From NCBI GenBank assembly GCA_977017575.1, contig CDRNVI010000156.1:248001-312000 (forward strand): a stretch of 64,000 nt of DNA, in the 5' to 3' direction. The position numbers and the translations under genes were made by a program. Below the pieces are notes generated by a model. It ran no database searches. It was not told the DNA's origin and worked only from the letters and a program-made list of their open reading frames with translations. This DNA is from Paramoeba atlantica (taxonomy: Eukaryota > Protista > Discosea). Below, in pieces: positions 58,909-61,061 of this stretch (positions are counted from its first letter, which is position 1; each line of letters opens with the position of its first letter).

Positions 58909-60490
58909 ATGGATCCTGAGAAAATCTGTTCTGATGGGGCCAGTATGAGACTTGATATTCTTTTGGGACTTTTTCTCTTTTTCTCTTACTTTTATTTTTT
59001 TTTGAAGGAAATCCTCAACCTGTCTGTTTCACTTCCGTTGTCCTCTTTTGGGTGATGATCGCCATGAACGCATGTTGAACTCTCCCCCTTTCTCCGCTTA
59101 CCTCCAATTCTTCTCACGATTGAAAAGATAGGTCTCTTCATTTCTTGTTGCACCATTATGTATTATGCTTTGAGAACAGAAAAACAATGGAAAGTTACGA
59201 AATTCGTGAAGGTTCTTTTATCTTTTTCTCTTTTTTTTCAACATCAACAAATGAATGAGTTTTTCAACAAAAGTTTTTCAACAGGTCTTGATCCCCCTAC
59301 TCCCAACTTTTCGTTTAATTAACATGGCCATCATTGGCAAATACTTTTTTGTTCAGGTTGAATCGTGCTCTTCCTTTTTGAAATTTTTTTTTATTTATTA
59401 TTTAATTCACTCTGCTGATTCATTCTTCGAAGGATGGAAGGTATGCAGCCAACCAAAATATGTGGGCGATCGTCACTGGTGGGATCACTGGCTACATATT
59501 TATTTCTATTTATTCTCTCTTAGTGATCTTCTGGTAGGAGTTTTTGATGAACTTTTTTTGTCTGAAGTCTTCAAAGCCCAACACTCCCTCCTCCACACCC
59601 TTATTCACATCACACCCTTCTCATTCAAGGTTCCTTCTGTACAACATGGCCAACACAGAGAGATACAGGATTGTTCAAACAATGAAAAGGGTTGGTTGTT
59701 TTGAGTTTTTTAGGCTTCCTTTTTTCTCCTTCTTCTCTCATTTCATTTTTAGACCGCGATTGGATTGAACGTTCTGATGTACGGTATTTGGCTGACTCTC
59801 ATTATCCTGATGGCAACCTTGAATGAGAAAAAAGAGGTCAATTAAAATCTCATATATTTTCTTTTATTTTTCTTTTGAGATTGAAAAATCAATCCTCATT
59901 TCCCAAGGAGATTCATACTGTGGAAGCTTGTTATGCTGCAAGTTTGGACATCATTGTTGCGGTGGTATGTGTTTTTCATTTTTTTTGGGTTCTTTGGTTG
60001 TTGTTTTACGAATTCTTAAAAACGAAAAATAATAATCCTCTCAAGGCTTTTCTCCTTTTTGGGGGTCGACTTCATTTTCAACTCACTCGAATGTCGATAA
60101 TCTCTCCTGAGTCTCTAAAAATTGGACGAAAAGTTGGAGCGCTGACGATCATATGTGCGGTGGTGTTTTCTGCGAGATCAATCCTTCTCTTTCTCGACGT
60201 ATTTTATTTTTCAACAGCGATTGAGTTTATTGCATCAACAATTTGTTTCAACCTTCTTTGTGAGGTAAACATTTTTTTTGTTTTTTTTTTAAAAAAAAAA
60301 AGTTCTCTTTTTTTTGGTTCCTCTCTCTCACGGTTTTACTGGCAAGACTTTTCCAACTGTCCTGATCATGTTCATCCTCTCCGCTGAATATTTCCAGGCG
60401 TTTTCTTTTCCAAGAGCACAGGAGACCGAAGAAAGCGAACAGCTGGTTAACACACTCTCGAGCGAATTGTCATCATTCTCTTCCCACTAA
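58909..60490 (+). CDS. THH1/TOM1/TOM3-family (GPR137-like) multi-pass membrane protein; multi-exon
   Basis: FLLFGGRLHFQL...KVGALTIICAVVFSARSILL...E/TFPTVLIMFIL matches the TOM1-family pattern FL.YGGRL...VG.VT.IC..CF..R...E..P...LFIL. Confidence 0.7.
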
Positions 60491-60547
60491 AGAGGAGAAA
60501 ATTCTCCTTTTCAGAGAAAAGAAAAAAAGACAGGAAAGGAGGGGGGG

Positions 60548-60661
60548 GATCAGATTGGGTAAAGCTGGCCAAGTAACAAGGAATTTGGGGTGCCCAGCTC
60601 ATCAAGCATGAAAGTCTTGATGTTCCCGCTCATCATGTTGGTGTAGAACACCGGATGGATC
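60548..60661 (-). ncRNA. SNORD13: Box C/D snoRNA, U13/SNORD13/snR45-type (SSU rRNA helix-45 acetylation guide)
   Basis: Minus strand: GATCCATCCG...ATGATGA (box C, 60630-60636)...AGCTGG-GCACCC...CCTTGTTAC (60573-60581)...CCAGCT-TTACCCAATCTGA (box D, 60550-60553). Two elements are antisense to the SSU rRNA 3' end (GTAACAAGG and CGGA[A/T]GGATC), in the same layout as human U13. TATAAAAA lies upstream at 60713-60720. Confidence 0.8.
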
Positions 60662-61061
60662 TTTAAAAAAAAAAGAAAAAGAAAACTTTGTGACCTTGGA
60701 GGTCGATGAGTCTTTTTATATTTTTGGTCTATTTGAATTTGGTGTGAAAAAAAATACAAAAAAAACAACATTTTTTTGTGACGAATGACGTCGAGAGAAC
60801 GTTTTATTGGACGTATTTTGAATGTCAAAAAAAGAAAACGCTTTTTTGCGTTTCTAAAATTTTGCGCTCACAAAAACACACACAATTTTTGTTCTGTTTA
60901 TCACAACGGACCTCGGGAATTTTTCTCTTCTCTCCCTCCTCTCTTTCTCTTTCTCTCTCTCTCTCGACTTTGTCTCTTGAGAGGCTCAAATATTGGTGAC
61001 AATTCTCCCTCTAACAATTTGTTTCATCTTCTTTTTGTAACCTCATCTTCTGTGGAGGGAG

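Follow-up and report, generated by a model that had tools for sequence, protein, structure and literature searches.

A predicted U13/SNORD13-type box C/D snoRNA gene of an AT-rich unicellular eukaryote, with a 5′ antisense element matched to a rare base of the host 18S rRNA

U13-type snoRNAs serve as guides of acetylation near the end of the small-subunit rRNA, a role that experiments have demonstrated for the homologues of human and yeast. In its published form, SNORD13 combines boxes C and D with two antisense elements, one 5′ and one internal, and with three scaffolding stems, while the masking of the 5′ element in a 3′-extended precursor, through stems IV and V, is less conserved (PMC9670809). 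Yeast snR45 and Arabidopsis snoR105/108/146 are likewise box C/D RNAs whose two antisense elements bracket helix 45 of 18S rRNA and which guide Kre33/NAT10; compared here by description only, they differ from SNORD13 in architecture and are poorly conserved with respect to it in sequence (PMC9226516, PMC9670809). For Drosophila, a 2022 survey describes a SNORD13-like RNA that guides helix-45 ac4C (PMC9226516); this RNA lacks a 5′ antisense element, whereas the RNA reported here has a strong one. In the same survey, a slime mould, ciliates and a microalga were found to carry ac4C in helix 45, and no SNORD13 was identified in unicellular eukaryotes, algae or most fungi (PMC9226516). The survey thereby left two options, namely that the guide is ancient but hard to detect, or that NAT10 acts alone in these organisms. 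In the literature we found no later report of SNORD13 in unicellular eukaryotes.

The DNA analysed here, referred to as the window, is a single stretch of 64,000 nt. By direct reading of the sequence, all the motifs listed in the preliminary description were found on the minus strand, and motif reading combined with alignment to Rfam and to a covariance model of our own (R1, described below) showed that positions 60548-60661 encode a 114-nt box C/D RNA with a U13/SNORD13-like layout. We number the RNA from the G at position 60661; its ends are approximate, with the 5′ and 3′ limits inferred only from where conservation stops. From 5′ to 3′, the RNA comprises a terminal antisense element, box C, three stems, the internal element CCUUGUUAC presented in a loop, and box D. 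The features of the locus and its surroundings are as follows.

60387, plus strand: end of the last exon of a THH1/TOM1-domain gene, a neighbour of the snoRNA locus
60548-60661, minus strand: predicted U13/SNORD13-type box C/D snoRNA (RF01210 alignment 60548-60660; R1 alignment 60548-60661, 58.4 bits)
60550-60553, minus strand: box D CUGA, RNA nt 109-112, within UUACCCAAUCUGA (DNA TTACCCAATCTGA), read in the sequence and aligned to the boxes of RF01210 and R1
60557-60559, minus strand: 3′ strand of stem I, CCC, RNA nt 103-105 (constrained fold, covariation)
60563-60599, minus strand: stem III AGCUGG/CCAGCU, RNA nt 63-68 with 94-99, plus the enclosed loop (folds); the strands 60599-60594 and 60568-60563 enclose GCACCCC...CCTTGTTAC
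60573-60581, minus strand: internal antisense element CCUUGUUAC (DNA CCTTGTTAC), RNA nt 81-89, complement of 18S nt 2068-2076
60600-60622, minus strand: stem II hairpin CAUCAAG/CUUGAUG, RNA nt 40-62 (folds; the homologous hairpin, helix 3, covaries)
60625-60627, minus strand: 5′ strand of stem I, GGG, RNA nt 35-37, pairing with CCC 60557-60559 in the constrained fold
60630-60636, minus strand: box C AUGAUGA, RNA nt 26-32, read in the sequence and aligned to box C of RF01210 and R1
60640-60652, minus strand: 5′ hairpin H1 GGUGU/ACACC, RNA nt 10-22 (MFE and constrained folds)
60652-60661, minus strand: 5′-terminal antisense element GAUCCAUCCG (DNA GATCCATCCG), RNA nt 1-10, a 10-nt perfect complement of host 18S CGGAUGGAUC
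60665-60685, minus strand: T-rich tract of 21 nt between the candidate TATA box and the RNA 5′ end, from sequence alone
60713-60720, minus strand: TATAAAAA, candidate promoter element (TATA box), likewise
from about 61414, plus strand: LRR gene, the other neighbour of the snoRNA locus

In the folds, the pairing of stem I (nt 35-37 with 103-105) brings the two internal helices together in a three-way junction; box D lies 19 nt downstream of the internal antisense element. The fold-energy z-score of the RNA is only -1.67.

Alignment to the RF01210 consensus of Rfam shows that the parts follow the same order as in vertebrate U13, just as had been claimed from the motifs. The likeness extends to the 5′ AUCC..., the GGG after box C, the hairpin, the stem around GC-CCC...CCUUGUUAC and the segment UUACCC-N-UCUGA, with GGG and CCC at the same sites in the vertebrate consensus. 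Both RNAs, moreover, target the two sides of helix 45 around CCG and adopt a three-stem fold (PMC9670809). Several features set the window RNA apart from vertebrate U13. Its 5′ element, GAUCCAUCCG, pairs perfectly over 10 nt, free of G-U pairs and bulges, and has A at position 6 (A6); an extra hairpin stands between this element and box C. The internal pairing covers 9 nt, whereas the vertebrate consensus adds GAC after CCUUGUUAC. A 3′ extension complementary to the 5′ end is missing, and the Rfam score stays under the family cut-off.

At gathering thresholds, Rfam gave no match anywhere in the window. In a relaxed scan of 501 nt, RF01210 (snoU13) aligned over all 104 model positions with 32.2 bits and an E-value of 5.3e-5, about 0.007 when rescaled to the 64-kb window; the alignment as printed shows no base pairs, the score reflecting primary sequence. 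The covariance-model check suggested in the preliminary description was thus borne out as regards an end-to-end match at a low E-value, but not as regards the curated cut-off of 46 bits, under which the RNA falls. With 32 bits against a cut-off of 46, annotation pipelines would miss the gene, and on this ground it is likely unannotated. Across the entire 45.7-Mb assembly, the locus is the best RF01210 candidate, and the snoRNA gene is present as a single copy. A search of the 45.7 Mb for the bipartite combination of antisense elements (10-mer, 30-80 nt, 9-mer) gave a single match, and the control with the reversed pattern gave none.

The assembly holds two eukaryotes, a kinetoplastid-type organism and the AT-rich organism that owns the window (example stretches are C76:1663-100182 and C149:207169-548989, respectively), so genome-wide presence or absence must be called per organism. 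In the AT-rich type, 40 copies of 18S read GCGGATGGATCATTA and one more differs by a single base; they lie on contigs C137-C244, sampled pieces of which have 32-39% G+C, like the contig of the window (C156). The kinetoplastid 18S form, GCAGCTGGATCATT, is found in 13 copies on contigs C26-C136, with 42-50% G+C in sampled pieces, and the kinetoplastid-type contig C76 carries a tandem 11-kb rDNA array. The 40 rDNA copies of the AT-rich organism are not arranged in tandem: they are spread over at least 15 contigs at distances of 35-90 kb and share one orientation within each contig.

We also searched the assembly for partner proteins. NAT10, fibrillarin and Nop56/58 were found on kinetoplastid-type contigs only, and none of them on AT-rich contigs. 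The NAT10 on kinetoplastid-type contigs carries four Pfam domains; an assignment of NAT10 to the window's own organism was withdrawn, as both copies sit on those contigs. Actin was found on AT-rich contigs, so the protein search does reach them, and the AT-rich part of the assembly is incomplete, given that the partner proteins are missing there though actin is present. The actin on AT-rich contigs is a conventional one with 501 bits, and the best actin-family match below C137 reaches only 129 bits (432 aa); the kinetoplastid may be without conventional actin.

Called for the AT-rich organism, the 18S rRNA ends ...CGGAUGGAUCAUUA in 40 of 40 copies (in longer readings of the tail, ...CTGCGGATGGATCATTA and ...GTAACAAGGTATCCGTAGGTGAACCTGCGGATGGATCATTA), and this end pairs 10/10 with the RNA 5′ end. 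The AAGG form of the tail was found in 0 copies in the assembly. From the 5′ element, a host 18S terminating in ...CGGATGGATC instead of the usual ...CGGAAGGATC had been predicted, and this is true for all 40 copies of the AT-rich organism. RNA nt 1-10 complement 18S 2095-2104 (10/10), just 3′ of helix 45, and CCUUGUUAC complements 18S 2068-2076 (9/9), just 5′ of helix 45 and five nt before the target C. Helix 45 itself keeps 5′-CCG-3′ (18S ...GGUAUCCGUAGG..., with C2081 as the middle C), which upholds the further claim that the two antisense elements lie either side of an SSU helix 45 containing this motif.

The 5′ pairing involves a matched change of bases. Among 21 aligned members of the family, position 6 of the RNA is A in the window and U in all 20 other relatives, and this A6 matches the rare U of the host 18S. 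Judged from the aligned guides and the host tail, A6 and the 18S U represent a double change, the guide and its target compensating for each other. One 18S copy, at G000:C182:61760-61785, has GCAGATGG in place of GCGGATGG, a G-to-A variant that falls within the U13 pairing site on the 3′ strand of helix 45.

Environmental relatives were sought by scanning metagenomes with the pattern ATCCWTCC, gap, RTGATGA, gap, CCTTGTTAC, in which box D was not asked for; this pattern was derived from the candidate itself, and about 24 matched bases are therefore shared by construction. The scan returned 54 loci (L017-L070). About 40 of them, representing at least 14 sequence types, carry U13 features that the pattern did not contain, namely box D, a GGG/CCC-type stem beside the boxes, a hairpin after box C, a stem around the internal element, and a C-rich tail, which comes after box D; the relatives also carry a GCCCC motif. 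Stems I-III appear in constrained folds of the window RNA and of nearly all relatives, and the environmental RNAs have the same full architecture of boxes and stems as the window RNA. Their box D follows CCTTGTTAC at a spacing of 18-20 nt mostly, and of 12-13 nt in three types. Twelve other scan loci, all without box D, were rejected as chance matches to the pattern. The internal CCUUGUUAC is invariant across all family members, as the search pattern itself required. Every true relative has ATCCTTCC at the 5′ element; the environmental RNAs thus read AUCCUUCC, implying the common 18S form GGAAGGAU, from which the window differs. When 12 environmental loci were scanned with RF01210, it matched 3 at only about 33 bits, under the Rfam threshold, so such genes stay unannotated.

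In 13 of 16 relatives, a 3′-flank segment up to about 80 nt past box D is complementary to the RNA's own 5′ element; it often reads GGAAGGAT(C) and agrees with the published mask of pre-SNORD13. This mask is absent in the window, where the best duplex of the 5′ element with the 90-nt downstream flank reaches -4.4 kcal/mol; 298 of 300 shuffles give a stronger one. The 3′-extension mask is an accessory, not a defining, feature of the SNORD13 family.

We further built the covariance model R1 from 11 environmental sequences, with the window left out. R1 matches the window from one end of the model to the other, with 58.4 bits (E 4.6e-13), a score that tops all other sequences outside the training set, and across the 45.7-Mb assembly the window is its only match (E 3.3e-10). 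The 12 chance loci, which meet the same pattern, gave no R1 match at E<=1, so the shared search pattern does not explain the R1 score. Covariation was assessed on 22 sequences in a model-guided alignment, which was fitted to the model structure and hence offers support, not proof: 82.6% of cells were paired, the corresponding figures being 54% for shuffles and 35-48% for controls with slid partners, and double changes affecting both sides were present in 21 of 21 pairs. By element, all three stem I pairs covary across relatives, double changes occur in 6/6 pairs of the H1-equivalent hairpin, which most relatives possess, and the stem III homologues (helices 4-5) show them in 7/7 pairs. RNAalifold on a plain MAFFT alignment (A1) gave no pairs, with the hairpins misaligned, and was replaced by the constrained folds and the model-guided alignment.

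Taken as a whole, the minus strand of the window at 60548-60661 is probably a U13/SNORD13/snR45-type box C/D snoRNA gene of the assembly's AT-rich eukaryote. The analysis shows that its sequence is unique, that it complements 18S at two sites with a compensatory change at one of them, and that it is related to a family whose stems covary; by analogy with the studied human and yeast homologues the RNA would be expressed, assembled into a snoRNP and engaged in acetylation. A kink-turn made of box C (nt 26-32) with box D (nt 109-112) would bring in the core box C/D proteins, and the GGG/CCC of stem I would close the three-way junction, the arms of which are the stem II hairpin and stem III. The loop of stem III would display CCUUGUUAC and, through it, pair with 18S nt 2068-2076 immediately before helix 45. 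Immediately after the helix, 18S 2095-2104 would be bound by the free first ten nucleotides of the RNA (nt 1-10), which would thereby invade the three closing base pairs of helix 45. Both duplexes would thus clamp the pre-18S 3′ end, with C2081 staying unpaired for N4-acetylation by NAT10/Kre33. When the RNA was cofolded in silico with the 3′-terminal 55 nt of the host 18S, both intermolecular helices formed, helix 45 went from 10 to 5 pairs, and U2077-C2081 became single-stranded with the target C exposed. When the 18S tail was given its common AAGG form, only 5 pairs of the 5′ duplex formed and helix 45 retained 8.

A role as chaperone was the first proposal for vertebrate U13. The window RNA could accordingly be a genuine U13-type snoRNA that acts solely in folding and processing at the 18S 3′ end/ITS1 junction and guides no acetylation. 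Its pairing either side of helix 45 would be the evidence for this, and pairing alone fits both roles; NAT10, too, was not found on the AT-rich contigs, and the 18S of C. elegans is unacetylated despite NAT10 (PMC9226516). We nevertheless consider a pure chaperone unlikely. The 5′-CCG-3′ acetylation motif is retained in helix 45, helix-45 ac4C has been detected in a slime mould and other unicellular eukaryotes (PMC9226516), and loss of SNORD13 in human cells and zebrafish removes ac4C with no processing or growth defect (PMC9226516). It is more improbable still that the locus is an unexpressed or decaying U13 relic: it is the sole copy in the assembly, its boxes and stems are all intact, and its 5′ element tracked the host 18S change, for which selection for pairing is needed. 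These points outweigh the facts that the window lacks the 3′-flank mask of most relatives, and that the promoter elements are unconvincing, the CGACC shared with the host U2 being too weak.

In methylation guides, box D or D′ immediately follows the antisense element, and the fifth paired nucleotide is methylated. The window RNA does possess boxes C and D, and a 9-nt rRNA complement is typical of such guides. However, its internal element stops 19 nt before box D and has no D′ box after it, and its second element lies upstream of box C; from these positions relative to boxes C, D and D′, neither antisense element can direct fibrillarin. An assembly of motifs by chance is excluded by the unique bipartite pattern, by the R1 match, and by the 12 chance loci that gave no R1 match. 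That the locus is either an ordinary 2′-O-methylation box C/D guide of 18S or such a chance assembly is hardly credible.

The predicted snoRNA gene lies antisense between two plus-strand neighbours. Upstream of it, no minus-strand ORF of at least 70 aa was found as far as 63600, so the snoRNA is not an obvious passenger of a sense-strand intron, and independent transcription of the gene is at best plausible from the layout of the locus. The upstream TATAAAAA that had been reported at a distance of about 50 is present, but its position had to be corrected to 59 to 52 nt before the proposed 5′ end; at -59 to -52, a TATA box would be further upstream than usual. A minus-strand ORF of 92 aa at 60550-60828 was dismissed as an artefact of the RNA gene and the T-rich spacer and represents no gene. 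For promoter comparison, Rfam searches of the assembly for U3, U4 and U5 gave no matches. The AT-rich organism has one U2 gene, the upstream region of which shares at most CGACC with that of the snoRNA, too weak to count. This U2 gene (L072, 211 nt) is without a divergent upstream tRNA gene, and the short 150-nt U2 genes of the kinetoplastid-type contigs, L073 (G000:C56:311086-311235) and L074 (C79:79914-80063), have one just upstream, an arrangement known for trypanosomatid snRNA genes.

About 40 nt past box D, the minus strand contains an imperfect hairpin, AAAGGAGAA / UUCUCCUCUUU (window 60476-60523), which could be a 3′-end or termination signal of the snoRNA gene or of the convergent plus-strand gene. 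A second snoRNA downstream was considered and rejected: an ATGATGA is present at 60476-60470, with no box D after it, and the relaxed Rfam scan gave near this site a 17-bit match to snR13 that we judged to be chance.

The window RNA belongs to a known family, in a group where this family was sought and missed, and is no new kind of system. Together with the at least 14 environmental types, it can be retrieved by a simple pattern and a covariance model, all of them being sub-threshold in Rfam, and the R1 and pattern search provides a working model for finding the SNORD13 gene elsewhere. A SNORD13-type gene in a unicellular eukaryote, accompanied by many environmental ones, favours the option that the guide is ancient but hard to detect. 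The A/U swap, a natural compensatory mutation, is an argument that the 5′ clamp matters for function, a point left ambiguous by mutagenesis in human cells (PMC9670809). The chances seem to us about even that SNORD13 extends beyond animals, land plants and budding yeasts as an ancient eukaryotic RNA, with a three-stem, two-clamp design common to supergroups. If true, the perfect, unmasked 5′ clamp with its co-evolved A6 would be natural in-vivo evidence of selection on the 5′ pairing.
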